A program made the translations under genes and the position numbers. A stretch of DNA of 64,000 nucleotides from Macrostomum lignano (lineage: Eukaryota). Location: assembly GCA_002269645.1 (NCBI GenBank), contig NIVC01001776.1, forward strand, positions 124,001 through 188,000. The letters are read 5' to 3'. Under the pieces are notes generated by a model. It was not told the DNA's origin. It worked only from the letters and a program-made list of their open reading frames with translations, and ran no database searches. This document shows, one piece after another, positions 1 to 64,000 of this stretch; position 1 is the first letter of the stretch, and every line of letters starts with the position of its first letter.

Positions 1-8031
<8,031 letters not shown>

Positions 8032-35807: not shown

Positions 35808-36425
35808 TCAATCAGTGACGATGTCATCAAGCGGCTGGTCAGAGTCGCCGGTGGGCACGGAGTCGACCAGCTGGTCGCTGAAGGCGATGGCCACGGCGGC
35901 GCAGGCGGGGTTGGCGGCGCGGGCCCTGGCCAGGTAGCGGTCATAGTAGCCCATGCCCCGGCCCAGCCGCGCCCCGTCAGCTTGGCAGAATGCCAGGCCT
36001 GGTACTATAATGAGATCCAGCCCGCCGTTCTCCAGGCCCTCCTCCCTGGCGGGCGACCCGGGTTCGAGTCCCGGCTGCCGGATGCCCCACTTGGTGACTG
36101 GCAGCGAGGCCAGGTCCTCTCGGCCGGACACAGCCAGCATCTCCATGCCGCCGCCGCGGCTGTACCTCGGCACGAACAGCCGGCGGCCGCTATTGAAAAT
36201 GTCGGCCACAATGCCGGCCGTGTCGACCTCCTCCGGCATGCTCAGGTAGACGCTGATCCGCTTAGCCGAGCGGTACCGATCGCTGGCCAGCAGCTTCTGG
36301 ACAATGATGCCGGATTTTGAGCTGCGCTGCTCAGCTGATAGGGCGGCCAGGCGCGACTTGATGAGGCTGCGAAGCTGCGATTTGGCAGCTTTCACTGCGG
36401 CGGCAGCTGTTGGGCTGGAGGACAT
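35808..36425 (-). CDS. MTHFS: 5-formyltetrahydrofolate cyclo-ligase (methenyltetrahydrofolate synthetase), 205 aa
   Basis: KSQLR, ISVYLSMPEEVDT, LFVPRY, TKWGIRQP, LDLIIVPGLAF, RLGRGMGYYDRYL, DQPLDDIV family motifs. Confidence 0.96.
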   Translation of the reverse strand: MSSSPTAAAAVKAAKSQLRSLIKSRLAALSAEQRSSKSGIIVQKLLASDRYRSAKRISVYLSMPEEVDTAGIVADIFNSGRRLFVPRYSRGGGMEMLAVSGREDLASLPVTKWGIRQPGLEPGSPAREEGLENGGLDLIIVPGLAFCQADGARLGRGMGYYDRYLARARAANPACAAVAIAFSDQLVDSVPTGDSDQPLDDIVTD

Positions 36426-42800: not shown

Positions 42801-44691
42801 GGCCGTCAGGCGGACCGCCTGCCAGCTGAAGCGACAGCGCAGCGCTACGATCAGCACTCGATGACAGTCGGACTCGGCCGGGAGACGAACTCGCGACCAC
42901 GGATCGGCGCACAGCCGGTAATAGGCGGCCAGAGATCGGCGAACAAGTCGACGCCGCCCGCGACGCTGCTGGCTGGCGGGCTGGTCGGCCTGGAGTTGCA
43001 GCAGCAGCAGGCGGGCCAGGCAGGCGGGGAAGCCGGCCCGAAGGCAGGCCTGGCGACCCGGGGCGGAGCAGCGGCACAGCGCGGCCAGGCAGTTGAAGGC
43101 CAGGCGGCTGTCATCGCCGCCCAGCAGGCCGGCAGAAGCGACGGTCACCAGCGGGCTGCAGTCGAGATCGTCGGCCGTCAGGTGCTCAGGTGAGCAGGCT
43201 GGCAGCAGGTGGCCGAGCAGCCGGATAATAGCGGTGGTGATCACCGAGGCCGAGGACTTGGCGGGCTTTGACGCCTGCGCTGCTGACTGTTGCTGCCGCT
43301 TCGGAGGCTGGGACTGCGGCTGCTGGCCTGGAGATCTGCAGGGTGGGGAATCGTAAATGCATGGTTTGCATGAGGATCTGGGAGGCTGGCCCAGCAACTG
43401 AGGATCTGGGAGCCTGGCCCAGCAACTGAGGATCTGGGAGCCTGGCCCAGCAACTGGGGATCTGGGAGGCTGGCCCAGCAACTGGGGATCTGGGAGGCTG
43501 GCCCAGCAACTGAGGATCTGGGAGGCTGGCCCAGCAACTGGAGATCTGGGAGGCTGGCCCAGAGACTGAGGATCTGGGAGGCTGGCCCAGCAACTGAGGA
43601 TTTGGGAGGCTGGCCCAGCAACTGAGGATCTGGGAGGCTGGCCCAGAGACTGAGGATCTGGGAGGCTGGCCCAGCAACTGGGGATCTGGGAGGCTGGCCC
43701 AGCAACTGGGGATCTGGGAGGCTGGCCCAGAGACTGAGGATCTGGGAGGCTGGCCCAGCAACTGAGGATTTGGGAGGCTGGCCCAGCAACTGAGGATCTG
43801 GGAGGCTGGCCCAGCAACTGGGGATCTGGGAGGCTGGCCTAGCAACTGAGGATCTGGGAGGCTGGCCCAGCAACTGAGGATTTGGGAGGCTGGCCCAGCA
43901 ACTGAGGATCTGGGAGGCTGGCCCAGCAACTGGGGATCTGGGAGGCTGGCCCAGCAACTGAGGATTTGGGAGGCTGGCCCAGCAACTGACACTCTGGGAG
44001 TCTGGCCCAGCAACTGACACTCTGGGAGGCTGGCCCAGCAACTGAGGATCTGGGAGGCTGGCCCAGCAACTGAGGATTTGGGAGGCTGGCCCAGCAACTG
44101 AGGATCTGGGAGGCTGGCCCAGCAACTGGGGATCTGGGAGGCTGGCCCAGCAACTGAGGATCTGGGAGGCTGGCCCAGCAACTGAGGATCTGGGAGGCTG
44201 GCTCAGCAACTGAGGATCTGGGAGGCTGGCTCAGCAACTGAGGATCTTGGAGGCTGGCCCAGCAACTGAGGATCTGGGAGGCTGGCCCAGCAACTGAGGA
44301 TCTGGAAGGCTGGCCCAGCAACTGAGGATCTGGAAGGCTGGCCCAGCAACTGAGGATCTGTGTCCGGGAGGCCTCACCTGGAGAGTCTGGCAGCCAGTTT
44401 ATTCAGCAGGTGCGGACAGGCGCCAGCCGCCGCCAGCCGCTGCGGCCCGCCAGGCAGGCGAGTCACCAGGCGCAGACATCGAACCGACAGATAGACTTCA
44501 ACATCGTCGGTGTCTTCCGCATCAGCATTCGCCATGGCAACCAATTGTTCGCTGGCCTCCATAGCAACGAGCGGAGCGGCCGATCGCAGCAGGTCGTGAA
44601 TGCGTCGCTTAGCAACCAGAGAAGCGCCGGGGCCGCCGGAGGATTTGAGCAGGGAGTAGCTGGACAGCAGCGAGTCCAGCTGGCCGGCCAT
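39878..44691 (-). CDS. ARMC5: Armadillo repeat-containing protein 5-like (ARM + BTB), ~971 aa
   Basis: Exons 44378-44691, 41922-43335, 39878-41065 (phases 2,0 consistent). ARM region (RLCADPWSRVRL, CFAYDRRGLAELARWGL), Ser-rich linker, BTB (HRAALTARSDYFRALLAGSFAES...VLHLAYGC). Confidence 0.85.
41105..41860. repeat. Degenerate ~20-bp repeat with a perfect 39-bp higher-order block (ARMC5 intron 2)
   Basis: tctcatccaatctctggccg variants; atccaatatctggccgtctcattaatatatggctgtctc about 5 times. Confidence 0.88.
43370..44362. repeat. 28-bp minisatellite, ~35 copies (ARMC5 intron 1)
   Basis: Unit gaggatctgggaggctggcccagcaact. Confidence 0.96.
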
Positions 44692-45454
44692 GGCATCTCA
44701 GTGGCGAGGCTGCAAATCAAATTTTCGTCTAACCGGATGAAGAGCAAGCCGCTAGTCTTTGTATACTAAGAAGGCAATAAAAGAACAAAGAGGAAACGCT
44801 GAAAAAGTGTTCTGTTTATAATTCATAACTGCTTGCATAGTTTAATGGAAGGTTTAAATACGAAGTAGGTTTATTTGTGTTTGTAATAATACGAGCGTAT
44901 AGTATATAACAATATACAGTATACGAGATGAGAGCTTCGATATTAGTACAGAAGTATAAGTACCATAGTGTGAGTCTTGTACGGGAAAGTAGTGTAATGC
45001 GAGCATATTGGGTAGGGCCAGAGTAACTCTACCGAATCCCAACTCAGGGTGAAATTCTCTCTAACACGGGGTAGCCAGATTCAAACAAAACAAAACAATT
45101 GGCAATAATATAAAAAACGATTTGAAAGATTTCTGGGCTACCCCGCTATATCTCCGGTTTCTTAAATTTGGTAAAACAATATGCAAAACAGCTACTTACC
45201 AAAGTAAGTAGTATTGGGGCGTGGTGAGTCAGAGAGTCGGCGGAGCAGCAGGCAGGGCAAAAATAAGCTTTGTACAAATAAGATAAAGAAAAATACATCT
45301 CCGTAAAACAATGGTAAGCGACAGATGAATAAAACACTTTATTTAACAGAAGCCATTATTGATTGGTGAAATTCCAGGTACAGGTTTTCTATAAAATCAT
45401 CCTAAGGTTGCACTTGACCTGAGGATCAGACCAGTTCAAGGCGATTCTCACGGT

Positions 45455-46700
45455 AATTTATGGGGCGATTCTCATTGTGGACTATGGGGCGATTCTCAGC
45501 GTGGATTATAAGGCGATTCTCAGGGTGGATTATGAGGCGATTCTCAGGGTGGATTTTGGGGCGATTTTCATGGTGGATTATGGGGCGATTCTCATGGTGG
45601 ATTATGGGGCGATTCTCATGGTGGATTATGGGGCGATTCTCATGGTGGATTATGGGGCGATTCTCATGGTCGATTATGGGGCGATTCTCAGGGTGGATTA
45701 TAGGGCGATTCTCAGAGTGGATTATGGGGCGATTCTCATGGTGGATTATGGGGCGATTCTCAGGGTGGATTATGGGGCGATTCTCAGGGTGGATTATGGG
45801 GCGATTCTCAGGGTGGACTATGGGGCGATTCTCAGGGTGGACTATAGGGCGATTCCCAGGGTGGATTATGGGGCGATTCCCAAGGTGGATTATGAGGCGA
45901 TTCTCATGGTGGATTATGGGGCGATTCTCAGGGTGGATTATAGGGCGATTCTCAGCGTGGATTATGGGGCGATTCTCAGCGTGGATTATGAGGCGATTCT
46001 CAGCGTGGATTATGGGGCGATTCCCAGGGTGGATTATGGGGCGATTCCCAAGATGGATTATGGGGCGATTCTCATGGTGGATTATGGGGCGATTCTCAGG
46101 GTGGATTATGGGGCGATTCTCAGCGTGGATTATGAGGCGATTCTCAGCGTGGATTATGGGGCGATTCTCATGGTGGATTATGGGGCGATTCTCATGGTGG
46201 ATTATGGGGCGATTCTCAGCGTGGATTATGAGGCGATTCTCAGCGTGGATTATGGGGCGATTCCCAGGGTGGATTATGGGGCGATTCCCAGGGTGGATTA
46301 TGGGGCGATTCCCAAGGTGGATTATGGGGCGATTCTCATGATGGATTATGGGGCGATTCTCAGGGTGGACTATGGGGCGATTCTCATGGTGGATTATGGG
46401 GCGATTCTCATGGTGGATTATGGGGCGATTCTCAGGGTGGATTATGGGGCGATTCTCAGGGTGGATTATGGGGCGATTCTCAGGGTGGATTATGGGGCGA
46501 TTCTCATGGTGGATTATGGGGCGATTCTCAGGGTGGATTATGAGGCAATTCTCAGGGTGGATTGTGGGGCGATTCTCATGGTGGATTACGATACGAATTT
46601 TCATAGTGGATTATGAGGCGATTCTCATGGTGGATTATGCTGCGATTCTCATGGTAGATTATGGGGCGAATGTAAGGGGCGATTCTCAGAGTGGTTTATG
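45455..46700. repeat. 24-bp minisatellite, ~50 copies, between JADE-like and ARMC5
   Basis: Unit ggattatggggcgattctcagggt. Confidence 0.96.
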
Positions 46701-46933: not shown

Positions 46934-49900
46934 CTACCGCGGTCTGGGCCTCTGTCGCCGAGGCGTCGTCAGCTTCTGCTGCCGCTTACTTGCTGCCGGC
47001 ACCGCGGCATGAGTGGCAGAGTTTGCACGCGGTTGCCCATTCCGCCTGACTGATTTAACAGCGGAAGCTCTGCAGCTGTGACCCCGCCGCTTGTCTGAGT
47101 TGTTGTTGCCGTCAACCTGCGGCGGCCGACTACCAGCTGGCATCGGCGGAGTCGACGGCGAGCTGGAGGCCGCGGCGGCTCCTTTCTGCTTGCCGAACTG
47201 GCAGCCCAGCTGGCACTCGCCAATCCGCTGGCAGGTGTGCAGCAGGCTGCGCTTGGTTTTCTCCCGCCTCAGCACCAGGTAGCAGAGATTGCGGACTCGC
47301 TCCAGGTCCAGCCTGAGGCGGACCAGGGTGCGGCCCTGCTGCACCAGCTTCGCGTCCTCGGCGCCGCCGCCGCCGCCCGGGCCTTCGATGCTGACAGCCG
47401 GCGACGAGCTCTGATAGCCGCAGTCTGCGGCTGATGTCGCTGAAGCAGCCGCAGAAGCCACGGCCTGCTGCGCCAATGGCAGGTGCAACTGCTGGCAGAG
47501 GTGGCCAGAAGGGTCGGAGCAGTCGGCCACGGAGGTGGTCAGCATTGGGCGACAGCCGCCTGCCTGCGAGAGGGAAATGCAGATTGCCATGTGAGGAGCG
47601 GAGAGGCTCATGCAAGGAGCGGATGTGAGGAGGAGCGGCTCATGAAGGGAGCGGATGTGAGGAGGAGCGGCTCATGAAGGGAGCGGATGTGAGGAGGAGC
47701 GGCTCATGAAGGGAGCGGATGTGAGGAGGAGCGGCTCATGAAGGGAGCGGATGTGAGGAGGAGCGGCTCATGAAGGTAGCGGATGTGAGGAGGAGCGGCT
47801 CATGAAGGGAGCGGATGTGAGGAGGAGCGGCTCATGAAGGGAGCGGATGTGAGGAGGAGCGGCTCATGAAGGGAGCGGATGTGAGGAGGAGCGGCTCATG
47901 AAGGGAGCGGATGTGAGGAGGAGCGGCTCATGAAGGGAGCGGATGTGAGGGAGAGGCGCAGGTGCCTGTGGTAAAACTCACAGTTCTCTTCAGCTTCCAG
48001 TAATCCAGAACGAGCGACACAGTTTTGGCGTCGATCTTTCGCGAGCCAAGGCTGCGCTGCAGGTCGCCGGGACTGACGGCCGTGTGGAAGTTTGCCTCCA
48101 ACTCTTTTAGCCTGCGGGTTTTTTAGTAACTTACAAGTAGTATATTAAGGATATTTTTGGGATTAAAGCATCTAGAAGGGTCGAGATTGAGATCTGGGGT
48201 CGGAATCTGGGATGAAGTGGGTATGAAAGCCATGGAATTGTAACGCTGAAGGGGAAAGGGAAACTTTAGGGGATCTGTAATAATGGGAATACTGGGATCA
48301 GGAATGGAAAACTTGATTAAAAGGGGATTTTGAATGGGAAAACTAGGATAAAAGGTTATTTTGAATGGGAAAACTAGGATAAAAGGTTATTTTGAATGGG
48401 AAAACTAGGATCAAAGGTTATTTTGAATGGGAAAACTAGGATAAAAGGTTATTTTGAATGGGAAAACTAGGATAAAAGGTTATTTTGAATGGGAAAACTA
48501 GGATAAAAGGGAATTTTGAATGGGAAAACTAGGATAAAAGGGAATTTTGAATGGGAAAACTAGGATAAAAGCGGATTTGGAATGGGAAAACGACGATAAA
48601 AGCGGATTTTAAATGGGAAAACTCGGATAAAAGGGGATTTGGAATGGGAAAACTAGGATAAAAGGGGATTTTGAATGGGAAAACGAGGATAAAAGGGGAT
48701 TTTGAATGGGAAAACTTGTACTTAGACATCGGAGAATATCAGGGGAAGTGAAAGACAGCAAATGGGATCCACCAGAAAGCAAAACCTACTTCATGTTTCT
48801 CTTATTAAGAAGGCCATTGTCAGGTCCGGTACGATTTCTTCCCAGTGTCTCCCGCTGCAGTGCCAAAGCCAGCTGAACAGGTGGCTTCCCCTTGAGCTGT
48901 TTCAGCTTCCGCTTGAGCTTCATCAGCTGCTCTCGCCTACGGCGCCACTGCCGCTCGCGTCCCATGGCTTTGGCCGCTTCAGCCGTGTCGGCGTGTCGAT
49001 CACAGTACACCAGGTACTTTCGTCGACCGTCCCGACCTTCTACTGAGGCCAGCCGGCCTCCGCTGCCGGCTACGCCGACGCTGCCGCAGCTGGTTGCTAG
49101 GCAACCGACGTGGAATGCGGCGTTGCAGCGCCGGACGCCGCACTGGACGCAGGCGCCGACGCCGCGCTGTCGACAGATCCGACAGAGCAGGGCGCGTCGC
49201 CACGGCGGCACCTCGGCTTCGAAGTCCTGAGAAGTGAAAGATAAACAGAAGTTGATTCGTTTTTCAAAATTGGCCTCTTCAAACGTTGCGAGCATTGACC
49301 ACAAATTCATTTCGAGCGGTTTCCTCACACTATCTGGTTGTCTATGTAAACAATAGTAATAACAATAATTGATTACACCTGCCCCGATTGGGCCAGATGT
49401 GCAACCGACAGCTTAGCCGCAGCTATTGCGCGGCGCATCTGAAGGCTGCGTACGGCTGTTCAGTCCAAGGACTGGGGGGTCGCCACACACCCTCAATTAC
49501 CCCAGCTAATGCTGGCACCCATTTTACAGCTGGGGTGAACTGAAGCAATGCAGAGGTTGAAAGTGTCTTTCTCAATAACACAAATTGTTCCAGTGAGATC
49601 GGGAATCGAACCCCCGACCTTCCAAGTCGTGAGTCCGACGCTCTAAACTACTAGGCTACAGCCCCTGTCCACCACTAATGTAAACAAATGCATAAAAAGA
49701 CAACTACTAATATCCTCTCAGCTCGCAGGCACCCCCCCCCCCCCTTGGACTCAAAGATCGGCCAATCACAATCAGCACCGTCACCCCCTCACCTGAAGGG
49801 GCTCAGTGACGGCGTCAACATCGCCGAAGGTGACCTCGGGCAGCCAGAGCGCGCAGGCCAGGTGGCACCAGGAGTCGGGGTCGCAGCCAGCCGATTTCAT

Positions 49901-50285
49901 GGCTATGACGTGGCCAAACGAAGCCGCCGACGAAGAGGACGAGGCGTCGTTGGCCGGGCAGAGCAGGCAGTCCGGGCGGCGGCGGAGGCCCCGGCTGCAG
50001 GGCTGGCACAGCCAGGTGCCCTCGGGCACGTCGGTCAGGCCGTAGCAGGCCTGGTGCACCGCGGCGTCGCAGCCGTCGCAGAAGACGATCTCGTTGTCTG
50101 GGCCGGCCTCCGGGCAGAGGCAGGCGCTGCAGGCTACGCTGGAGTCGAACTCGATGCCCAGGCCGGCGGTGCCCCGGAGACTGGCCTGGGAGGGGGGGGT
50201 TCAGTGTGCAGGCCGCTTAGCAAAATTCTTAGCCGCTTAGCAAAATTCTTAGCCGCTTAGCAAAGACAGACAGACAGACAGACAC

Positions 50286-50344
<59 letters not shown>

Positions 50345-51609
50345 CACAGACAGACAGACGGTCAGACAGACAGAAAGAAAGCCGTACCTGAAGCCGGGCA
50401 TGCGTGGCCACCTCGGCGGCGGTGATGACGGCTTCCAGATGGTCAGGTGACACGCCAGTCAGTCGCATCCACCTGGCGTCCAGTTCGTCGGAGCAATAGC
50501 CAACGGTGGAGCCGTCGCGGATAGCCGCGGGCAGGTCCTCGGAGGCCGGCTCGGTGCGGAGCAGCTGACGGGCGGGCAGGCGCCAGCTGGCGGGCTTTCC
50601 GGCTGGCGCGGTGGCCGCCTCGCTGCTCAGCGGATTGTCGCCGGGTGACAGCAGGCGAACGGTCGGCTCCAGCCGGTCCGAGTCGATTGGCACCTGAGGA
50701 ATGCGGGGTGAGATTGGGGCAGTCCAATCTGGTCAAGTCTGCTATTATGCTGGAAACTTTACTCGTGTCAATACAAAAAGTGACGATTTACTGAAAAACA
50801 TCACGCTTACTCGTAAAAGAGCCATTTCTAGGAAATACTGATTTGGCAGAAGCTTCCACTTTGCAATGGACAGTTCTTTAAAAGCGTAGTTAGACAGACC
50901 TGAGAAGACAAACAGACAGACAAACACACAAACAAGGCAAGCAGACAGTCAGACACACAAACAAGGCAAGCAGACAGTCAGACACACAAACAAGGCAAGC
51001 AGTCAGACACACAAACAAGGCAAGCAGACAGTCAGACACACAAACAAGACAAGCACACAGACAGACACACAAACAAGACAAGCAGACAGACACAAACAAG
51101 ACAAGCAGACAGACACAAACAAGACAAGCAGACAGAAACAAACAAGACAAGCACACAGACAGACACAAAAAAGACAAACAGACAGACAGACACACAAACA
51201 GACAGTCAGACACACAAACATGACAAACAGACAGACAGACAAACAGGCCAGAACAGACAGGCGATAATTTTATCTACTTCATAATCACCTGAACGCCTCG
51301 CTGCCACTCGTGTCGCCAGGGATCCGTGACCCGCAGCGGCCGCTTACTGGGCAGGCCGGGCTCAGCATCGGGGACGGTCATGCGGCTCACGTAGGCCGCG
51401 TCGAAGCACTCGGCTAGGGTGGACTGGCTGTCCGCATCGAATTGGCGCCATCGGCGAAGCCGCCTGTGCCAGTCGGAGACCAGACTGTGCTGCTGCTCCC
51501 GATGATGCTTCTTGACTTGATGCGGCTGAGCAGGATGCTGCTGCCGCTGATGCTGATGATTGTTATGCCTGCCAGCAGCCGAGGCGGATGCTCGCAATAC
51601 TGAAGGCAT
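46934..51609 (-). CDS. JADE: JADE/PHF17 (rhinoceros)-like EPC-N + PHD-ZnK-PHD chromatin protein, ~738 aa
   Basis: Exons 51289-51609, 50388-50693, 49793-50185, 48790-49226, 47982-48111, 46934-47563 with consistent phases. DPWRHEWQRGVQVP, GLGIEFD..C..C, IVFCDGCDAAVHQACYG..VPEGTWLCQPC, HLACALWLPEV, GACVQC, DYWKLKR, LRLDLERVRNLCYLVLRREK. Start codon and extreme 3' end are less certain (possible extra intron ~46990-46903). Confidence 0.9.
47590..47950. repeat. 32-bp minisatellite, ~11 copies (JADE intron 5)
   Basis: Unit ggatgtgaggaggagcggctcatgaagggagc. Confidence 0.95.
48315..48718. repeat. ~30-bp minisatellite, ~13 copies (JADE intron 4)
   Basis: Unit like gaatgggaaaactaggataaaaggttattt. Confidence 0.93.
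49350..49665 (-). mobile_element. CORE-type SINE copy 3 (full length, JADE intron 3)
   Basis: Reverse complement matches copy 1 from the tRNA-like head to the (att)n tail. Confidence 0.88.
50263..50380. repeat. (GACA)n microsatellite (JADE intron 2)
   Basis: Direct observation. Confidence 0.95.
50895..51260. repeat. Degenerate GACA/CAAA simple repeat (JADE intron 1)
   Basis: Direct observation. Confidence 0.9.
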
Positions 51610-54600
51610 TGAGCAGGGGACTTCCCGCACCAGATTTTATTCAACAGTGTGTGTTTAGGAAGCAGTAGTCAATGCTGAGTTGTAGCATTGAGTGACTATT
51701 ACTGATTGGAGAGTTGCATCAATGCAATTCAGATTAAGCGATTGATTAAATTTATCCTAATAATTCTAACTATTGGGGGTTTTGTTTTATAGACATTTGT
51801 CAGATCAATGTGTGTGCTATAGGAAGTCCTCATGTCCCAACTGTGGCCAATTTGTTTTTTTGGCTCACTGGGAGAATGCATTAAATTTTCTTGGATCATA
51901 AAGAAAGCTGGCTTTCTTGGATCATAAAGTTTACCCCAGTGGTGACTTGATTTCTACTAAAGTTTATTGCAAACCAAACTATATTGACCTTGAACAATAA
52001 TGCTCTTTGTTCAAGGCAGTGAAAACTTGGTCTGATTAAATGCATGCTTCATTGGACTTTGGATTTTTATCATGAAGTTGAAATGCTCAGTCAAAAAAAT
52101 TCTTTAATCCCTCTTTAATTGTGTAAACTTATGTTAATGCTCGCATCCAATTAACTTAATATTTCAAATGTGTAAAGAATTTTTATATTCTGTATCTATG
52201 GGTTAATAACTGCATTAAACTATTTAAAGTGTACATGGGTGGGTGCCTTGTGATGTGTATACCACACAATTGTTGGATGTTATTGGAATATGCATTTTAT
52301 TAGGATAATTATAAGCATAACAGTGTCTTATAACTTAAGCATACATATTAGGAAACTTTAGTAACTACTATGCAATGTGCAAGAGGAACAGTGAAAACTT
52401 ATTCTAATATGTTTTACCAATTAGTTTGTCTGCAAAGCAGATCTTTGGTTCTATGCTTCCCTTCTTATTTTGCAACCTTAATATCAAAGTCAATAGTTGA
52501 GTCATTTTATTTGATGATACACTTACAACAGCAACAAGGAGGCCAGACAAATGATACCCTGCAGCTATGGACCAAGCTGGCTTAGACCATGGCCCCCATT
52601 GGCAGCAAAGCTAGCAAGTTATTTCTTGACTAGGCTGCATGTAGATGTATCATTCTAGCAGTAATAATTGTGGTCTACACTTGCATAGGGTGCCATTTTT
52701 TATTCCCAGTCTAAGGCAATAGCACATGCCACTAGTAAGGTGATGGACAAGAAGAAAAATGCTGCAGGCAGCTACTCCTTGATTGGTGATATGGTGATAC
52801 AAATAAGTAGAACTAGTAAAGACTATAATACTTGTATATAGTATACAAGTTGGCATATAAGCAACTTTATTCTTAGCATAATTTTTTATTAATATCAGCA
52901 TAGAATAAAAAACTAGAATTTTCATTCCATTGTATGCCTACCATGGTCTAGACTAGGGTTTGCACTGCAGTGCTGATAAATCCCTCTTCTCTTAACCAGC
53001 TTAGTAAATTAACTGCACTTATAAACTAGATTAACCTTTTTAATCATTGATCAATAAGCCTGCCTAGCATTAGCTTGAGTAATTTGCCAGGCAACTAATG
53101 ACATAAAAATACCAAATTTCTTGATTCCAAATAAGCTCTGAGAAATATCAGTCTATAATACATTAATTATAGTGGTAGTAGCACTATTATAATTATAGTA
53201 GGAATCAAAGTATATACATATATATTGATTTGTGTTTAGACCAGAATGAACTATGTCAAACTTATAATTACTTGATTATGACTTGAACTACCTTCTCCCT
53301 GGAATTGAAGACCTGGCAAATAGAATAACCCAATGGAATTAATGAGTTCTACACAAAAAATTAACTTGAATTGTGCAAACTCACATGTAGGCACTAGGTA
53401 ACAATTCAAAAGTCTAAACTACCCCAATTTAGAATTTTGTCTCAAACTGCCCCCATCTTAGAGAGACCACTCCCTGCTAGTTTTCTATTAAAAAGGTCAC
53501 CATTGAAACTAATATAGTAATTACTTTATATTTTAATATTAGAATAGAATCATGTACACATTTTTGAACAAAAAAAGTTCACTTAAAATGACCTATAGGA
53601 AGTTATCTACACCCAATGTGCAAGCATTCTTAGCAGTTATGCACTCTTTTATAAAAAATGAATCTCCTAAACCCAATATTTTCAAGCAAATTTGGCACAG
53701 TTTTGAAAATGTACAAAAATGTACATTGTACACCCATAGTGCAGAAGGATTTCTGTATACGACGGAAGGTAAATTTTCATTTCGGCCTGTTGTACGACAG
53801 TACGACAGGGATTGGAAAATGGTACTAGTGTTGTACGACAGAGTTAGAGTTTAAGGAAGTGCTGTACGACAAAAATAGTGGCACTTACATATGTGGGTAG
53901 GTGCAGGAAATTCTTGATATTGCGTTTTTTTCAATATGCAAAGTAAAACAACAGATATATTGTACTTTTCTGCTTGCAATGTAAGGTATAGTTTTGCGCC
54001 AATAAAATTGAATTTAAGAGTTTGTACGAATTTCTTCTAATATACTAAAAATGAAATGCTTGGTTGCTTGCTTGTAATTGATTTTCTCCCGAACGGCTCA
54101 ACCGATTTTCTTCAAACTTGAACCATTCGATCAGAAATTTTCCCGGGACGGTACATGCATATTGGCTAAGAAATTGCTCAATGTTAAAGGGATTAAATAT
54201 TCGAAAAACATGATTTTTTGCAAAGGTCAAGCAGCTCTTTCGACCTGAAATGCATTGTAAGAATGCTAGAGAAAAATCTGACTGGTTGAATTCTGATTCT
54301 GAAATAGATTGCATCACAATACACTTTATTTATCGTCTGTGTACTGGCTGAATTTGACACTCAATTGAATTGCGTCACAGCTTTGAGGGTGAAAGTATAG
54401 TGCAGTACTGAATTTATATTACGTAACCATATTGTTAACTTTCATAGACACTGGTACTGACTTGCCTAAGAAATTGATTATGTCATAACTGCTTCGCGTG
54501 ACTTTTTACTCTACCTGACTTGGTGTGAGTGTTGAATTAATTATATAAGTGGTACAAATTCACTGATAACTTCGATGAGAGCTAGCCTAGAGCTGAGCAG

Positions 54601-54705
54601 ACCAGACTGCTAATGCAGCGACCTGGGTTCGAATCTAAGTAGTTTAAAAGTAGTAGTGTAAAATTTTTTATTAAAAGCTTTTATTAAAGGACTAAATAAA
54701 AACAC

Positions 54706-57050
54706 TTAGATTACTGCACTCGATAAGCTAAGGATTATTGCTCTTGGCAAACCAAGGAATACTGCACTCGATAAGCCAAGGATTATTGCTCTTGGCAAAC
54801 CAAGGATTACTGCACTCGATAAGCCATGGATTATTGCTATTAATAAACCAAGGATTACTGCACTCGATAAGCCAAGGATTATTGCTATTAATAAACCATG
54901 AATTACTGCACTCGATAAGCCAAGGATTATTGCTATTAATAAACCAAGGATTACTGCACTCATAAGCCATGGATTATTGCTATTAATAAACCAAGGATTA
55001 CTGCACTCGATAAGCCAAGGATTATTGCTATTAATAAACCAAGGATTACTGCACTCGATAAACCAAGGATTATTGCTATTAATAAACCAAGGATTACTGC
55101 ACTCGATAAGCCAAGGACTATTGCTATTAATAAACCAAGGATTACTGCACTCAATAAACCAAGGACTATTGCTCTTGGCAAACCAAGGATTACTGCACTC
55201 GATAAGCCAAGGACTATTGCTCTTGGCAAACCAAGGATTACTGCACTCGATAAGCCATGGATTATTGCTATTAATAAACCAAGGATTACTGCACTCGATA
55301 AGCCAAGGATTATTGCTATTAATAAACTAAGGATTACTGCACTCGATAAACCAAGGATTATTGCTATTAATAAACCAAGGATTATGCACTTGGCAAACTA
55401 AGGATTACTGCAATCGATAAGCCAAGGATTATTGCTATTAATAAACCAAGCATTACTGCACTCAATAAACCAAGGACTATTGCTATTAATAAACCAAGGA
55501 TTACTGCACTCAAAAACCAAGGACTATTGCTCTTGGCAAACCAAGGATTACTGCACTCGATAAGCCAAGGATTATTGCTATTAATAAACCAAGGATTACT
55601 GCACTCGATAAGCCAAGGATTATTGCTATTAATAAACCAAGGATTAATGCACTCGATAAACCAAGGATTATTGCTATTAATAAACCAAGGATTACTGCAC
55701 TCGATAAGCCAAGGATTATTGCTATTAATAAACCAAGGATTATGCACTTGGCAAACCAAGGATTACTGCACTCGATAAGCCAAGGATTATTGCTATTAAT
55801 AAACCAAGGATTACTGCACTCAATAAACCAAGGACTATTGCTATTAATAAACCAAGGATTACTGCACTCAATAAACCAAGGACTATTGCTCTTGGCAAAC
55901 CAAGGATTACTGCACTCGATAAGCCAAGGACTATTGCTCTTGGCAAACCAAGGATTACTGCACTCGATAAGCCATGGATTATTGCTATTAATAAACCAAG
56001 GATTACTGCACTCGATAAGCCAAGGATTATTGCTATTAATAAACCAAGGATTACTGCACTCAAAAAACCAAGGACTATTGCTCTTGGCAAACCAAGGATT
56101 ACTGCACTCGATAAGCCATGGATTATTGCTATTAATAAACCAAGGATTACTGCACTCGATAAGGCATGGATTATTGCTATTAATAAACCAAGGATTACTG
56201 CACTCGATAAGCCAAGGATTATTGCTATTAATAAACCAAGGATTACTGCACTCGATAAGGCATGGATTATTGCTATTAATAAACCAAGGATTACTGCACT
56301 CGATAAGCCAAGGATTATTGCTATTAATAAACCATGAATTACTGCACTCAATAAACCAAGGACTATTGCTATTAATAAACCAAGGATTACTGCACTCAAT
56401 AAACCAAGGACTATTGCTCTTGGCAAACCAAGGATTACTGCACTCGATAAGCCAAGGACTATTGCTCTTGGCAAACCAAGGATTACTGCACTCGATAAGC
56501 CATGGATTATTGCTATTAATAAACCAAGGATTACTGCACTCGATAAGCCAAGGATTATTGCTATTAATAAACCAAGGATTACTGCACTCAATAAACCAAG
56601 GACTATTGCTCTTGGCAAACCAAGGATTACTGCACTCGATAAGCCAAGGACTATTGCTCTTGGCAAACCAAGGATTACTGCACTCGATAAGCCATGGATT
56701 ATTGCTATTAATAAACCAAGGATTACTGCACTCGATAAGGCATGGATTATTGCTATTAATAAACCAAGGATTACTGCACTCGATAAGCCAAGGATTATTG
56801 CTATTAATAAACCAAGGATTACTGCACTCGATAAGGCATGGATTATTGCTATTAATAAACCAAGGATTACTGCACTCGATAAGCCAAGGATTATTGCTAT
56901 TAATAAACCATGAATTACTGCACTCGATAAGCCAAGGATTATTGCTATTAATAAACCAAGGATTACTGCACTCGATAAGCCATGGATTATTGCTATTAAT
57001 AAACCAAGGATTACTGCACTCGATAGCCAAGGATTACTGCGCTTGATAAG
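54706..57050. repeat. 24-bp satellite (~97 monomers) mostly arranged as a 48-bp A/B dimer
   Basis: A aggattactgcactcgataagcca alternates with B aggattattgctattaataaacca (variant ...ttgctcttggcaaacca). Confidence 0.96.
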
Positions 57051-57444
57051 CTTGGCTACATGTATAGGATTATTTCTATCCAGGGATGCTTGCTATTTAG
57101 GGATTCTTGCTATGTGCAGGATGCTTGCTATCTGGAAGGATGCTTCTACATTATTTGGGGTATGCTTGCTATCTGCAAGATGCTTGCTATCTGCAAGATG
57201 CTTGCTATCTGCAGATGCTTGCTATCTGGGTGGATGCTTGCTAGGAGTATTAGGGGATGCTTGCTACTGGGGGGATGCTTGCTGTCTTGGGAATATTTTC
57301 TATTTAGGGGTAATGACTAAAATTCATGAGAGCTAGCCTAGAGGTAAACAGACTAAACTGCTAAATGCAGGGACGATGGTTCGAATTTTTAGAGAGTAGA
57401 GTTTTTTTAATTAAAGCCTTTTAACGCCAAGACAAAAAAAATTA

Positions 57445-58400
57445 TGGAAGCGTCATGTAAACAATCATACAAGCGTCATGTAAACAATCATAGAAGCGTC
57501 ATGTAAACAATCATAGAAGCGTCATGTAAAAATCATAGAAGCGTAATGTAAAAATCATAGAAGCGTAATGTAAACAATCATAGAAGCGTCATGTTAAAAT
57601 CATAAAAGCGTCATGTAAACAATCATACAAGCGTCATGTAAAAATCATAGAAGCGTCATGTAAAAATCATAGAAGCGTCATGTTAAAATCATAAAAGCGT
57701 CATAAAAAATCATAGAAGCGTCATGCAAGCAATCATAGAAGCGTAATGTAAACAATCATAGAAGCGTCATGTTAAAATCATACAAGCGTCATGTAAACAA
57801 TCATACAAGCGTCATGTAAACAATCATAGAAGCGTCATGTAAAAAAATCATAGAAGCGTCATGTTAAAATCATAGAAGCGTCATGTAAACAATCATAGAA
57901 GCGTCATGTAAACAATCATAGAAGCGTCATGTAAAAATCATAGAAGCGTCATGTAAAAATCATAGAAGCGTCATGTAAACAATCATAAAAGCGTCATGTA
58001 AACAATCATAGAAGCGTCATGTATACAATCATAGAAGCGTCATGTAAACAATCATAGAAGCGTCATGTAAAAAATCATAGAAGCGTCATGTAAAAATCAT
58101 AGAAGCGTCATGTAAAAATCATAGAAGCGTCATGTAAAAATCATAGAAGCGTCATGTAAAAATCAAAGAAGCGTCATGTAAAAAATCATAGAAGCGTCAT
58201 GTAAAAATCATAAAAGCGTCATGTAAAAAATCATAGAAGCGTCATGTAAACAATCATACAAGCGTCATGTAAACAATCATAGAAGCGTCATGTAAAAATC
58301 ATACAAGCGTCATGTAAACAAGCATAGAAGCGTCATGAAAAAATTATAGAAGCCTCATATAAAAACTAATGAAAGTGTGTCATTTAAAAAATTAAGAAGC
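57445..58400. repeat. 22-23 bp satellite, ~42 copies
   Basis: Unit aatcatagaagcgtcatgtaaa(c). Confidence 0.95.
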
Positions 58401-59304
58401 ATCATGGAAGAATAAAAGAAGCGTAACGTAAAAATCAAAAGAAGCGTCATGTCAGACATGAAAGAAATGTCATATAAAAATTAAATGAAGCTATAGTACA
58501 GTGCTGTGCTGGGGAGAATTACTGAGACGTCAAGGCTCACAGAGAATAACTGAGATTACAGGGGGGTTTCTGAGATGTTAAAGCAAAAGTCAGAAGCTAC
58601 TTCAAAGTACATGTACTTTACTTAAGTTTTTTATTGCATTCTTTGTTGGCTTGCCACGGTGGGGGGGGCGCTGATAGAAGAAGAGTCATGTAAAAATAAA
58701 AGGAGCACTATGTATACATAAAATAAAAGTCATGTCAAAGTTAAAAGATTCATTTGGGAATTGCTACGATGTCAAAGCTTGGAGGGAATCGTTATAGTGC
58801 TGTGATTCTTAAAGAAGGAATCACTTAAATGCCAAGGCTTAGGGAAGAAGAATTGCTGTGATTTCAAGGCTTTAGGTTGGGTGAAAGTTAGGTTTACGTC
58901 AGGTTTGGGTTGAGGGTTAGATTTTAGCGCGTTTCAAGGTTAACAGGGGATTTTTTAGATTTCAAGGTTTATGGGGGCATCGCTGACATGTCAAGGCTTA
59001 CGAGGGGAATCTATCTATCTATCTATAGCTGAGATGTCAAGGCTCACGGGGGAATAAATGAGATGTCAAGGCTAATGTCAGAAGCTACATGTAGTTTATT
59101 GGAAAAAAGTTATTACATTATTTGTTGGCTCCTCACGGGAGGGATCGCTGATAGAAAAAGCGTAATGTAAAAAAAAAAGAAGCTTCATGTCAAAGTTAAG
59201 AGATTCATTTGGGAATCCCTACGATGTCGAGGCTTGCAGGGAATCGCTATAATGCTGTAGTAGTGCTATAGACTCTTAGAGAGAATTACTGAAATTTCAA
59301 TGCT

Positions 59305-59338
59305 TTAGGGTTAGGGTTAGGGTTAGGGTTAGGGTTAG
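59305..59338 (+). repeat. Interstitial telomeric-type repeat (TTAGGG)5-TTAG
   Basis: Direct observation. Confidence 0.85.
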
Positions 59339-59919
59339 AAAATAGACAGATTTTTTAAGATTTCAAGGCTTGTGGGAGCATTGCTGAGATGTCAAGGGGG
59401 GAGTTGATATGTTAAGGCTTGTGGGGGGGGATTTCTGACATGTCAAGGCTTACAAGGGTACTGGTAGCGTACTGAAGCATACTGGTAGAAGTAGCTCTGA
59501 AAGAAGGCAAGTATGGTTGAATTTCAATGTCTGTTATAAAATTCTGCACAAACATGTTTTATTGGTACATAAGCCTGGAATTAAAATGAGAATTCGATTC
59601 CTAGCCCCCCTCCCTAAGAATTTTTTTTCATTTAAAAGGATTCGTCCCTTGCTTATTGGCCACCCCGAAGGCCATTTTTTATCAAAATGATAAAAATAAT
59701 TTTTATCAAACACGTTGACATATACAGGGCTCTAAACTAAAAACTGTAAAAAGTTGATAGTTTTGTTTTACCTAAAATGCGTTATTAACGATCTCCAAAA
59801 ATTCCTATTTTAAGCTTAAGCTTAAGAAAAACACTTAAAGTACTCCTGCTAAAAGGTATATTATATTAGACGAATATTAATTATTTCTGCTCCCCGAAGG
59901 GGGGCAAAACTTTAGCTAG

Positions 59920-62900
59920 TCTTCTTAATATAATATACTAAAAATGAAATGCTTGGTTGCTTGCTTGTAATTGATTTTCTCCCGAACGGCTCAACCGATT
60001 TTCTTCAAACTTGCACCATTGGGACGGTACATGCATATTGGCTAAGAAATTGCTCAATGTTAAAGGGATTAAATATTCGAAAAACATGATTTTTTGCAAA
60101 GGTCAAGCAGCTCTTTCGACCTGAAATGCATTGTAAGAATGCTAGAGAAAAAACTGACTGACTGAATTCCGATTGTGATAAAGATTGCATCACAACAAGT
60201 TGAAAACAGTGCCGAACAAATGCACACAAAACTTGAATGAAATTGCGTAACCATATTGCCAACTTAAATTGAGACTGAATCTGGCTGACTGAGAAATTGA
60301 TTATGTCATAATTTTTTACTCCAATTGACTTGCTGTAAGAATTGAATTATAAGGGCCACAATTCATGTTCTCCAATTGAAAAGAGATAGCCCTGATGCGA
60401 ACAGACTGGAATGCTAAAGTAGCGACCTGGGTTCGAATCTTAGTAGTGCAAAGAGATTTTTTTATTAAAACACCTTAAAAACACAACAAAACTGCTAAAC
60501 ATCAAAGAAGCGCAATTTCAAACATAGAAGAGCCAACATATCGAACATAAGAGTTACCATGTCAAACATAGAAGAGCCACCATGTCGAACATTAAAGAGC
60601 CACCATGTCGAACATAAAAGAGCCACCATGTCAAACATTAAAGAGCCACCATTTCGAACATTAAAGAGCCGCCATGTCAAACATTTAAGAGCCACCATGT
60701 CGAACATAAAAGAGCCACCATTTCGAACATTAAAGAGCCACCATTTCGAACATTAAAGGGCCACTATGTCAAACATTTAAGAGCCACCATGTCAAACATT
60801 AAAGAGCCACTTTGTCGAACATTAAAGAGCCACCATGTCAAACATAAAAGACCCACCATGTAAAACATAAAAGACCCACTATGTCAAACATAAAAGAGCC
60901 ACCATTTCCAACATTAAAGAGCCACCATTTCGAACATTAAAGAGCCACCATTTTGAACATTAAAGAGCCACTATGTTAAAAAATTAGGAGCCAACATGTC
61001 AAACATTAAAGAGCCACCATTTTGAACATTAAAGAGCCACCATGTCGAACATTAAAGAGCCACCATGTCGAACATTAAAGAGCCAACATGTCAGACATTA
61101 AAGAGCCACATTGTCAAACATTAAAGAGCCACTATGTCTACCATAAAAGAGCTATACCATGAAGAACATTAAAGAGCCACCATGTCAAACATAAAAGAGC
61201 CACCATGTAGAATATTAAAGAGCCACCATGTGAAACATTAAAGAGCCACCATGTCGAACATTAAAGAGCCACCATGTCAAAAATTTAAGAGCCACCATGT
61301 CAAACATTTAAGAGCCACCATGTCAAACATTTAAGAGCTACCATGTCAAACATTTAGGAGCCACCATGTCAAACATATATGTGACTTTATGTCAAACATT
61401 AAAGAGCCACCATGTCAAACATTAAAGAGCCACATTGTCAAACATTAAAGAGCCACTATGTCTACCATAAAAGAGCTATGCCATGAAGAACATTAAAAAG
61501 CCACCATGTCAAACATAAAAGAGCCACCATGTAGAATATTAAAGAGCCACCATGTGAAACATTAAAGAGCCACCATGTCGAACATAAAAGAGCCACCATG
61601 TCAAACATTTAAGAGCCACCATGTCAAACATTTAAGAGCCACCATGTCAAACATTTAAGCGCCACCATGTCAAACATATATGTGACTTTATGTCAAACCT
61701 TAAAGAGCCACCATGTCGAACGTTAAAGTGCCACTATGTGTAACATAAAAGAGCTACATCATGAAGAACATTAAAGAGCCACCATGTTAAACATTAAAGA
61801 GCCACCATGTGAAACATTAAAGAGCCACCATGTGAAACATTAAAGAGCCACCATGTCAAACATTTAAGAGCTACCATGTCAAACCTAAAAGAGCCACCAT
61901 GTCGAACATTAAAGAGCCACCATGTCGAACATTAAAGAGCCACCATGTCGAACATTAAAGAGCCAACATGTCAGACATAAAAAAGCCACCGTATCAAACA
62001 TAAGAGTTACCATGTAGAACAAAAAAGATCCACCATGTTGAACATTCAAGAGGCACCATGTCAAACATATATGTGACTTTATGTCAAACATTAAAGAGCC
62101 ACCATTTCGAACATTTAAGAGCCACCATGTCGAACATAAAAGAGCCACCATGTCAAACATTTAAGAGCCACCATGTAAAACATTTAAGAGCCACCATGTC
62201 AAACATTTAAGAGCCACCATGTCAAACATATATGTGACTTTATGTCAAACATTAAAGAGCAACCATGTCGAACGTTTAAGTGCCACTATGTGTAACATAA
62301 AAGAGCTACATCATGAAGAACATTAAAGAGCCACCATGTTAAACATTAAAGAGCCACCACGTGAAACATTAAAGAGCCACCATGTCAAACATTTAAGAGC
62401 TACCATGTCAAACCTAAAAGAGCCACCATGTCGAACATAAAAGAGCCACCATTTCAAACATTGAAGAGCCACCATTTCGAACATTAAAGAGCCACCATGT
62501 CAAACAATTAAGAGCCACCATGTTAAACATTAAAGAGCCACTATGTCGAACATTAAAGAGCCACCATGTCAAACATAAAAGAGCCAACATGTCAGACATT
62601 AAAAAGCCACCGTATCAAACATAAAAGACTTACCATGTAGAACAAAAAAGAGCCACCATGTCGAACAAAAAAGAGCCACCATGAAGAACATTAAGGAGCT
62701 ACCATTTCGAACATTAAAGAGCCACCATGTCGAACATTAAAGAGCCACCATGTAGAATATTAAAGAGCCACCATGACAAACATTAAAGAGCCACCATGTC
62801 AAACATTTAGAAGCCACCATGTGAAACATTAAAGAGCCACCATGTTAAACATTAAAGAGCCACCATTTCAAACATAGATGAGCCACCATGTTAGATATTA

Positions 62901-64000
62901 AAAAGAGCCACCATGTCGAACATAAAAGAGCCACCATGTCAAACATTTAAGAGCCACCATGTCAAAAATATATGTGACTTTATGTCAAACATTAAAGAGC
63001 CACCATGTCGAACATTAAAGATCCACCATGTAAAACATTAAAGAGCCACATTGTCAAACATAAAAGAGCCATTATGTCGTACATTTAAGAGCCACCATGT
63101 AAAACATTAAAGAGCCACATTGTCAAACATAAAAGAGCCATTATGTCGTACATTAAAGAGCCACCATGTAAAACATTAAAGAGCCACCATGTCAAAACAT
63201 AAAAGTGCCATCAAGTCAAACCTAAAAGAGCCACCATGTCAAACATAAAAGAGCCACCATATCGATCATTAAAGAGCCACCATGTCAAACATTAAAGAGC
63301 CATTATGTCAAATCTAAAGGAGCCATCATGTCGAACATTAAAGAGCCACCATGTCAAACATAAATCTGGCATGATGTCAAACATTAAAGTGCCACCATAT
63401 CGAACATTAAAGAGCCACCATGTCTAACAGTAAAGAGCCACCATGTCGAACATAAAAGAGCCACCATATCGAACATTAAAGAGCCACCATGTCAAACATT
63501 AAAGAGCCATTATGTCAAATCTAAAGGAGCCACCATGTCGAACATTAAAGAGCCACCATGTCAAACATAAATCTGGCATGATGTCAAACATTAAAGTGCC
63601 ACCATATCGAACATTAAAGAGCCACCATGTCTAACAGTAAAGAGCCACCATGTCGAACATTAAAGGGCCACCATGTAGAACATTAAAGAGCCACCATGTC
63701 GAACATAAAAGAGCCACCATGTCAAACATTAAATAACCACCATGTCGAACATTAAAGAACCACCATGTCAAACATTAAAGAGCCACCATGTAAAACATTA
63801 AAGAGCCACCATGTCAAACATGTATGTGACTTTATGTCAAACATTAAAGAGCCACCATGTCAAACATGTATGTGACTTTATGTCAAACATTAAAGAGCCA
63901 CCATGTAAAACATTAAAGAGCCACCATGTCAAACATGTATGTGACTTTATGTCAAACAATAAAGAGCCACCATTTCGAACATTAAAGAGCCACCATGTCA
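59920..64000 (+). mobile_element. Non-autonomous Helitron-like element, copy 2 (continues beyond the window)
   Basis: Starts TC immediately after the CTAG of copy 1; first ~560 bp homologous to 54033-54690. Confidence 0.7.
60510..64000. repeat. 23-bp satellite, ~150 copies, runs off the window
   Basis: Unit cattaaagagccaccatgtcgaa; period 23 (61025 to 61048). Confidence 0.96.

Follow-up and report, generated by a model that had tools for sequence, protein, structure and literature searches.

The window analyzed here is a 64-kb stretch of contig NIVC01001776.1 of the flatworm Macrostomum lignano (assembly GCA_002269645.1, Mlig_3_7; all coordinates refer to the window, in which position 1 corresponds to contig position 124001). 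It comprises a gene-rich part and an AT-rich part. The boundary between them is sharp (51620-52000), and the GC content falls from about 50-65% in the gene-rich part to about 36% from just upstream of the start of a gene for a JADE-like PHD protein (46934-51609, gene start at 51609; NCBI name Macrostomum lignano BOX15_Mlig019500g1) to the end of the window. In the AT-rich part, two copies of one element adjoin each other head to tail, and both carry large minisatellite arrays (Table 1). They are likely to be two non-autonomous rolling-circle transposons (Helitron superfamily) of one family, with an architecture like that of Helentron-associated interspersed elements (HINEs), the non-autonomous Helentrons. 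A second copy of the locus, about 93-99% identical to the window, is present on contig NIVC01001641.1, and the two contigs have minisatellites in common that differ in copy number. The sequenced DV1 line has duplicated chromosomes, which give rise to duplicate blocks with at least 95% identity (PMC5730564), and NIVC01001641.1 is a duplicate block of this kind. Its stretch upstream of the PHD gene, designated L003, was compared with the window in window orientation.

Table 1. Features of the two adjacent elements and of the insertion site (window coordinates; TIR, terminal inverted repeat; subTIR, subterminal inverted repeat; MITE, miniature inverted-repeat transposable element; TRF, Tandem Repeats Finder; ORF, open reading frame)
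Feature	Position	Strand	Remarks
MITE-like element, left half	53727-54031	+	Left TIR TGTACACCCATAGTGCAGAAGGA, then GTACGAC subrepeats; host of the insertion
Element copy 1	54033-59919	+	5,887 bp, TC to CTAG; non-autonomous, no credible ORF
5' terminus and 5' subTIR, copy 1	54033-54047	+	TCTTCTAATATACTA; pairs with 59859-59873 at 13/15 positions
Recently shared 5' arm	54038-54319	+	About 99% identical to copy 2, 17-bp indel aside
Degenerate 4-nt microsatellite (GCTT/GGTT)x4	54058-54075	+	Left arm, read from the sequence; weak counterpart of the HINE left-flank microsatellite
Old diverged part of the left arm	54320-54567	+	About 36-78% identical to copy 2
Conserved block 1	54568-54708	+	A-box-like TAGCCTAGAGC, B-box-like GGTTCGAATCT, T6 at 54664-54669, ATTAAAA; array 39 nt after the T-run
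24/48-bp minisatellite	54709-57040	+	TRF; 48.7 copies of a 48-mer (2x24)
17-18-bp minisatellite GGATGCTTGCTATCTGCA	57076-57290	+	TRF
Conserved block 2	57300-57435	+	T7 at 57402-57408; array begins 27 nt later
23-bp minisatellite AAACAATCATAGAAGCGTCATGT, copy 1	57436-58481	+	TRF (57436-58452); about 45 copies
Degenerate tail	58482-59460	+	About 480-bp unit twice (58522-59006 / 59029-59458), 23-mer relics, GATGTCAAGGCT motifs
Two adjacent internal palindromes, right arm	59657-59696	+	TGGCC..GGCCA (has CCCCGAAGG, as the terminal hairpin) and TTTTTTATC..GATAAAAA
3' subTIR	59856-59873	+	GTATATTATATTAGACGA; 46-63 bp from the 3' end, upstream of the hairpin
3' hairpin	59888-59906	+	TGCTCCCC-GAA-GGGGGGCA, 19 nt; 13 nt before the 3' end, 14 nt downstream of the subTIR
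3' terminus CTAG (CTRR)	59916-59919	+	Copy 1
Element copy 2	59920-64000	+	Runs past the window end, 3' end outside the window
5' subTIR, copy 2	59926-59938	+	TAATATAATATAC, copy-2 nt 7-19
Conserved block 3	60350-60496	+	T7 at 60457-60463; array begins about 33 nt later
23-bp minisatellite AAACATTAAAGAGCCACCATGTC, copy 2	60497-64000	+	TRF; at least 152 copies, runs off the window end

The homology between 54033-~54690 and 59920-~60480, from which an earlier note on this DNA had started, was recovered with BLAST (E 1e-104) and MAFFT alike. BLAST aligned 54038-54319 with 59931-60195 at 91.5% identity (282 columns, with a 17-bp indel among them) and in addition yielded two weaker blocks (54418-54488/60242-60311 and 54578-54643/60382-60447). 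In the MAFFT alignment, the identity per 50-bp block was 98-100% up to about 54290/60165, the 17-bp indel aside, and then fell abruptly to about 36-78%. The near-identity followed by divergence that had been described was thus reproduced: the first ~250 bp of the copies are about 99% identical, the remainder about 75%. The left arm is about 660 bp long in each copy and ends in a conserved block that is described below, and in copy 1 the right arm is formed by the 460 bp following a decayed tail. The 5' end of copy 1 was set by the start of the homology together with a break in the alignment with the duplicate contig, and its 3' end by the start of copy 2.

Both copies begin with TCTTCT, and the ends of the family are TCTTCTTAATATAATATAC ... 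GTATATTATATTA-hairpin-CTAG. At the junction between the copies, the order is hairpin (59888-59906), AAACTTTAG, CTAG (59916-59919), and the TC of copy 2 (59920), and hence CTAG is directly joined to TC, as had been claimed before. The GC stem of 7 bp with a GAA loop that had been reported at this place is indeed present, with one T:G mismatch in the stem. No other GC-rich 7-bp hairpin occurs in the AT-rich part of the window (51650-64000, 12.35 kb), where CTAG is found 22 times. Because the second homology block starts exactly at a CTAG, with a hairpin that is unique in 12.35 kb located 13 nt before this start, the arrangement is not due to chance. A third CCCCGAAGG site, at 2625, forms no hairpin and was dismissed as a chance occurrence, and the same applies to a match to U4atac at 59791-59905 (21 bits versus a gathering score of 53, E 2.9). 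The two internal palindromes of the right arm fold with a DNA folding energy of -9.8 kcal/mol (z -3.26), a value that was reached by 0 of 200 shuffles.

In addition to these termini, an inverted repeat was found. Nucleotides 7-19 of copy 2, TAATATAATATAC, are a perfect 13-bp reverse complement of GTATATTATATTA at 59856-59868. An equal score was obtained neither with 2000 shuffles nor with 140 real AT-rich windows of 100 nt. The perfect core begins 6 nt from the 5' end and is extended to the end with mismatches. The pairing score of the copy-1 subTIR was matched by 15 of 2000 shuffles and by none of the 140 real AT-rich windows. The earlier note had listed TIRs among the results that would speak against a Helitron-like element. 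An inverted repeat does exist, but it is asymmetric and subterminal, as in HINEs. A classical TIR transposon or MITE was considered for the pair and rejected, because the 3' arm is internal by 46 bp and these remaining 46 bp are unlike the right flank of the empty site and thus are not target DNA.

That empty site is provided by the duplicate contig. The duplicate is 98.7% identical to the window over 52132-54031, and the alignment ends there, 1-2 bp before the TC of copy 1. At the break, the window reads GTTTGTACGAAT/TTCTTCTAATATACT and the duplicate GTTTGTATGAAT/ATAATACTGATAATTTAAATTACCC, and the 400 nt of the duplicate beyond the break have no 20-mer in common with the window. In the duplicate, the break point is spanned by an intact inverted-repeat element of about 663 bp (L003 4669-5331) with arms of 23 nt that are 91% complementary (L003 4669-4691 / 5309-5331). 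This MITE-like element has 23-nt TIRs (TGTAYAMCCATAGTG.GGAAGGA) and several subterminal GTACGAC repeats, and the window has retained only its left half. Because the duplicate with the intact element aligns only to 54031, the pair is an insertion in the MITE-like element: the sequence from 54032/54033 to beyond 64000 represents an insertion of at least 9.97 kb. The start of the insertion coincides with the start of the inter-copy homology, and therefore discrete mobile units are strongly favored over a local duplication. In the latter case, no transposon would be involved, and a segment of about 5.9 kb of a satellite-rich region would have been tandemly duplicated and would then have diverged. 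This would suit the fact that only two, adjacent copies were seen and that tandem repeats at all scales are very common in the M. lignano genome (PMC5730564). However, a local repeat does not account for a start of copy 1 within 1-2 bp of the break, nor for a unit boundary that has a hairpin, CTAG, TC and a subTIR, and the mosaic of 99% and then about 75% identity is unlike the outcome of a single duplication. We thus regard a local duplication as improbable.

The assembly itself also had to be considered. Of the M. lignano genome, 15% consists of simple and tandem repeats, which make it hard to assemble (PMC5730564). The CTAG/TC junction or the join at 54031/54032 could be an artefact of a repeat-rich PacBio assembly, whose difficulty and redundancy are known (PMC5730564), and the array lengths are especially unreliable in this assembly. 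However, misjoins fall inside shared repeats and not exactly at structurally defined element ends, and here two junctions agree, both with a TCTTCT start. An artefact at either junction is accordingly even harder to credit than a local duplication.

The window and the duplicate each have private insertions, because a further insertion is present in the duplicate only. Facing window positions 52132-52142, L003 contains 2.5 kb of GC-rich sequence that is absent from the window (6927-9424). It reads as a 5'-truncated reverse-transcriptase ORF, resembles a non-LTR (long terminal repeat) retrotransposon, ends in a (GTT)n tail and has the direct repeat GTTAATGCTC on both sides.

The insertion site was compared in the two states. 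The empty site in the duplicate is GAAT/ATAATAC, and the occupied left flank is GAATT/TC. The base preceding copy 1 is a T (54032), in agreement with the earlier note, so that copy 1 has this T on its left and the T of copy 2 on its right. The T before copy 1 would be compatible with the T-rich or TT targets of HINEs. The boundary Ts vary in the Helentrons that have been described (PMC4067079).

Two groups of Helitron-superfamily elements come into question for the pair. Canonical Helitrons have a 5' TC, a 3' CTRR, a palindrome of 16-20 nt located about 11 bp before the 3' end, and an A^T target; target site duplications (TSDs) and inverted repeats are lacking (PMC4067079). HINEs, which include DINE-1 (Thomas et al. 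2014), have subTIRs of about 11-15 bp, with the 5' one within a few nucleotides of its terminus and the 3' one located 38-60 bp from the end, and a palindrome 8-35 bp from the end (PMC4067079). They frequently carry tandem repeats or microsatellites, they insert at T-rich or TT targets without a TSD, and they have a short inverted repeat complementary to the 5' subTIR at a distance of 1-22 bp from it (PMC4067079). A subTIR-type inverted repeat is absent from canonical Helitrons and defines the architecture of Helentrons/HINEs and of Helitron2, and an autonomous Helentron encodes a Rep-helicase-AP endonuclease protein (PMC4067079).

The layout found here is that of a HINE. It opens with a 5' TC and a subTIR, continues with a long left arm and the central arrays, has the complementary subTIR in its right arm about 46 bp from the end, and closes with a GC hairpin located 13 nt before the end. 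Both distances are within the ranges of 38-60 bp and 8-35 bp given for HINEs (PMC4067079). The presence of a subTIR upstream of the 3' hairpin, together with central tandem repeats, argues for a HINE-like element rather than a canonical Helitron. The elements could instead be canonical non-autonomous Helitrons that are mobilized by a Rep/helicase without an endonuclease domain, in which case the inverted repeat would be incidental. The 5' TC, the 3' CTAG and the 19-nt palindrome 13 nt from the end fit the definition of these elements (PMC4067079), and one parse of the empty site is an A^T target (GAA^TAT). On the other hand, the 13-bp perfect subTIR lies at a HINE-typical distance, is far beyond chance and is foreign to canonical Helitrons, central tandem repeats are a hallmark of HINEs, and the flanking base is a T if the element starts with the TC seen in copy 2. 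A canonical Helitron is therefore unlikely, though it is the most serious competitor of the HINE-like architecture.

Several observations do not agree well with a HINE-like family. The empty site has no TT, so that the boundary has to be parsed as A^T (GAA^TAT, with an element starting TTTCTTCT) or one substitution is needed. The right flank is beyond 64000, so that only the left side bears on the target and on the presence or absence of a TSD. The Helitron-like CTAG at the 3' terminus is atypical of the Helentrons described, and the left-arm microsatellite has only 4 units. The short inverted repeat that typically accompanies the 5' subTIR of HINEs was not evident in 54033-54080 or 59920-59970; these regions exhibit only trivial AT self-complementarity, and the 5' end folds no better than shuffles. 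Moreover, only two copies were seen, both at one locus, and neither dispersed copies nor an autonomous Rep/helicase partner nor a second 3' end was retrieved from the sequences that could be searched. The remaining 54 kb of the window and about 36 kb of the duplicate contig contain no further copies, and three exact-ORF look-ups and one metagenome scan found nothing. Membership in a family is thus based on the structure of two adjacent copies and one empty site. Lastly, minisatellites constitute 37% of the adjoining gene-rich 51.6 kb, which is without a trace of the element, and therefore array growth may be due to a genome-wide habit no less than to the element. The verdict on the Helitron-like pair of the earlier note is divided: one non-autonomous rolling-circle-type family, arranged head to tail at CTAG/TC and with a 5' boundary confirmed by the duplicate, was upheld, but its 13-bp subTIR is unlike a canonical Helitron.

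No sign of a coding origin of the elements was obtained. The ORFs of copy 1 and of the 5' arm had no match in Pfam, and a word-index search of the 5' arm likewise gave nothing. A minus-strand ORF of 90 amino acids (54045-54317) spans nearly exactly the 99%-conserved 5' arm and is frame-shifted in copy 2 by the 17-bp indel; it is probably meaningless. The sole HMMER match, P0011 (E 7e-6), comes from an unrelated satellite of about 174 bp, in which the ORF is spurious, and its score is a sum over 8 repeats of that satellite. A coding or gene-capture origin of the 5' arm was thus discarded.

The central arrays account for 71% of the sequence from 54033 to 64000. The 24/48-bp satellite and the two 23-bp satellites that had been noticed were confirmed with TRF, and a 17-18-bp array was found in addition. 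The claim that the two copies carry different satellites stood only in part. The 24/48-bp array of copy 1 is unrelated to the 23-mers. In contrast, the 23-bp arrays have an equal position, period and orientation in both copies, and a first unit in common. The consensus 23-mers are only weakly alike (their score was reached by 13 of 500 shuffles), but the copy-2 array opens with a unit, AAACATCAAAGAAGCGCAATTTC, that aligns with the monomer of copy 1, AAACAATCATAGAAGCGTCATGT, at a local score of 31, which was reached by 1 of 2000 monomer shuffles and 0 of 2000 target shuffles. By this match, the arrays are homologous, and the two 23-bp satellites are diverged descendants of one central repeat.

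The 17-18-bp array is probably a shortened derivative of the 24-mer: the similarity between the 17-18-mer and the 24-mers was reached by 3/500 and 9/500 shuffles, and graded transition units are present at 57060-57130. The 24/48-bp and the 17-18-bp arrays are located between conserved blocks 1 and 2, which makes copy 1 an element of the double-array kind in which the block is duplicated. A derivation of the monomers from the unique arms of the element was also considered; apart from the 23-mer relics in the tail, no alignment was better than those of shuffles.

The tail of copy 1 contains a perfect interstitial telomeric repeat, (TTAGGG)5.7, at 59305-59338, and a degenerate telomeric repeat, GGTTTGGGTTGAGGGTTAG, is found at the corresponding position in the other ~480-bp unit of the tail (~58870-58910). 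Short arrays resembling motifs of this tail are present in reversed orientation in the right flank of the duplicate (L003 4269-4351 and 3055-3147); their units are 29 bp long, with TTCAAGGCTAATGGGGG, and 21 bp long, with TACTGGTAGCGTATGTAC. Therefore, these motifs are dispersed in the genome independently of the element.

Each of the three conserved blocks is followed by an array, which starts 27-39 nt after a T-run. The blocks are about 82% identical over a core of about 110 bp and have the same layout: TAGCCTAGAGC, GGTTCGAATCT 43 nt later, a run of six or seven Ts, and ATTAAAA. The exact sequence GGTTCGAAT occurs in the three blocks and nowhere else in the window. The loop CTGCTAA of the block resembles the anticodon loop of tRNA-Ser(GCT). 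With its A- and B-box-like motifs spaced as in a tRNA, its T-run and ATTAAAA, the block could be a tRNA-derived unit transcribed by RNA polymerase III (Pol III) that seeds satellites, with termination or fork stalling driving slippage, the duplicated block providing the slot for the 24/48-bp array, and the family acting as a "satellite generator" with an initiation module. We consider this proposal to have little chance of being correct. If it were true, a satellite-generating module would be present in elements that join Helitron termini with Helentron subTIRs. Another variant holds that the block is a tRNA-derived short interspersed nuclear element (SINE) or Pol III unit and that the whole was put together from SINE insertions that have satellite tails. 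The A-box-like TAGCCTAGAGC and the B-box-like GGTTCGAATCT, 43 nt apart and followed by T6-7 in all three blocks, would suit such an origin. However, ARAGORN predicted 0 tRNA genes in the block, and Rfam detected no tRNA at the gathering score or at E<=10, including in stretches of 111-116 bases. In addition, the block folds no better than shuffles (z ~0), a T-run right after the head would end Pol III transcription before any satellite tail was reached, and the TC, subTIR, hairpin and CTAG ends would be left unexplained. A composite of SINEs is thus scarcely credible, the least probable of all explanations considered. With ARAGORN and four Rfam scans yielding no tRNA and the folds being unremarkable, a tRNA or SINE origin of the block was dropped, and only the sequence resemblance is retained, as a lead.

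The anatomy, the insertion status and the homology of the arrays can be read from the sequences directly, and from them a scenario may be proposed for the transposition mechanism, the order of the insertions and the mode of array growth. The HINE-like elements would have been moved in trans by a Rep/helicase encoded elsewhere, with a nick at the 5' end and termination at the 3' subTIR/hairpin signal. They would have landed inside the MITE-like element upstream of the JADE-like PHD gene, either after the chromosomal duplication or on one duplicate only. The earlier note had referred to the formation of tandem copies by rolling-circle transposition. This could not be maintained for the pair: because the copies are 99% identical for about 250 bp and about 75% identical thereafter, they are mosaic and not two units of one concatemer, and a single rolling-circle concatemer or a simple end-bypass is ruled out as their origin. 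Most likely, two separate insertions would have taken place, one of them precisely where the other ends; copy 1, for instance, could have entered the T^T that the flanking T makes with the first T of copy 2. As an alternative, one copy might have recombined with the other. The near-identical 5' arm would then be a recently exchanged module or the result of gene conversion between neighbors. The native central repeat would be the 23-bp unit that starts about 30 nt after the conserved block, and slippage or unequal exchange may have made it diverge and expand separately in the two copies. Copy 1 would have gained a duplicated block together with the unrelated 24/48-bp array and the 17-18-bp array, both of which lie between the two copies of the block.

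The remainder of the window has repeats of its own. Positions 1-51650 contain 33 separate micro- and minisatellite arrays with periods of 4-43 bp, which together make up the above-mentioned 37% of the gene-rich part (51.6 kb), and many of them are located within or between exons of annotated genes. Arrays with unequal copy numbers in the window and the duplicate include one with a period of 24 bp (45440-46669) and one with a period of 28 bp (43371-44360). A 98-nt inverted pair with 97% complementarity and 48 kb between its arms (1364-1461 / 49391-49488) presumably represents two oppositely oriented copies of a short dispersed repeat. A large imperfect palindrome (10827-10984 / 11320-11460), with two arm pairs of 61-64 nt that are 91-93% complementary and 335-512 nt apart, may be another inverted-repeat element. 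Among the genes, MTHFS is encoded by a single-exon ORF on the minus strand (35808-36425), and exactly this protein is found on two contigs of GCA_002269645.1. The locus around it on one of them (L002) has 100% identity to window positions 25808-46425, which places the window at 124001-188000 of NIVC01001776.1.

The closest known counterparts of the pair are the Cg_HINE elements of the oyster and the related bivalve elements pearl, DTC84 and MgE (PMC7492417). Like the elements described here, they are non-autonomous, they have a 5' and a 3' subTIR, the latter with a palindrome after it, and the orientation of their central repeats is fixed. In Crassostrea gigas, 11 Cg_HINE elements with satellite-like central repeats have been described; in group 1, related flanks are combined with related repeats, in group 2, shared flanks are combined with unrelated repeats, and some elements have two consecutive arrays (PMC7492417). 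They are often found within other transposable elements, at T-rich sites and without a TSD, and recombination between elements or the capture of filler DNA has been proposed (PMC7492417). Shared flanks with related or unrelated arrays, two consecutive arrays and an insertion into another transposable element are thus likenesses to the M. lignano pair. The earlier note had regarded adjacent family members with the same scaffold and different satellites as unusual, but shared flanks with unrelated arrays as well as double arrays are known from Cg_HINE (PMC7492417), and distantly related Helitrons that directly adjoin each other have been found in bat and maize (PMC4067079). There are also differences. 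The oyster monomers are 140-180 bp long and the arrays mostly have up to 5 units (maximum 29), whereas the M. lignano monomers have 17-48 bp and form arrays of 1-3.5+ kb (45 to >152 units). The left arm of about 660 bp compares with conserved flanks of 50-100 bp in the oyster. Further differences are the CTAG 3' end, the flatworm host, and the location of the arrays after an A/B-box-like block rather than after a microsatellite.

The DINE-1/HINE elements of Drosophila, mites and mosquitoes resemble the pair in the size of the subTIR (12-15 bp), in the distances and possibly in the T-rich boundaries (PMC4067079). Their microsatellite or tandem-repeat cores can fill about 50% of the element (PMC4067079), and comparable arrays are present here. 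In contrast to the M. lignano pair, the Helentrons described lack a CTAG end, and the short inverted repeat by the 5' subTIR was not evident in the pair. Tandem repeats are also carried by a DINE variant, DINE-TR1. Canonical Helitrons of bat, silkworm and maize have in common with the pair the 5' TC, the 3' CTRR, a hairpin about 11 nt from the end, and tandem or adjacent insertions (PMC4067079). They differ in having no inverted repeats and a strict A^T target, whereas the M. lignano pair has a subTIR and an ambiguous target. Mixed features as in M. lignano are known from intermediate elements, the Phytophthora infestans proto-Helentron, which has a 3' CTAG, an A^T target and a Helentron-type Rep, and the Chlamydomonas Helitron2, which has asymmetric terminal inverted repeats and palindromes (PMC4067079). 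However, these elements of an oomycete and an alga are autonomous and protein-coding, whereas the M. lignano family is known from non-coding derivatives only. No report of Helentrons in Platyhelminthes was found in the searchable literature.

In summary, every organizational feature of the pair has a published precedent, and it represents an expected kind of repeat and not a new mechanism. The differences from the oyster HINEs are the host phylum, the minisatellite-sized monomers, the multi-kb arrays, the CTAG terminus and the block before each array. With its presence in one of the duplicated contigs and its absence from the other, the insertion is cleanly dated and offers a PCR marker that is ready for use. 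The mix of Helitron TC/CTAG ends and Helentron subTIRs bears on the relation of the two lineages. If the family is abundant, rolling-circle elements may spread and diversify minisatellites in M. lignano, as HINEs do in oysters and Drosophila.

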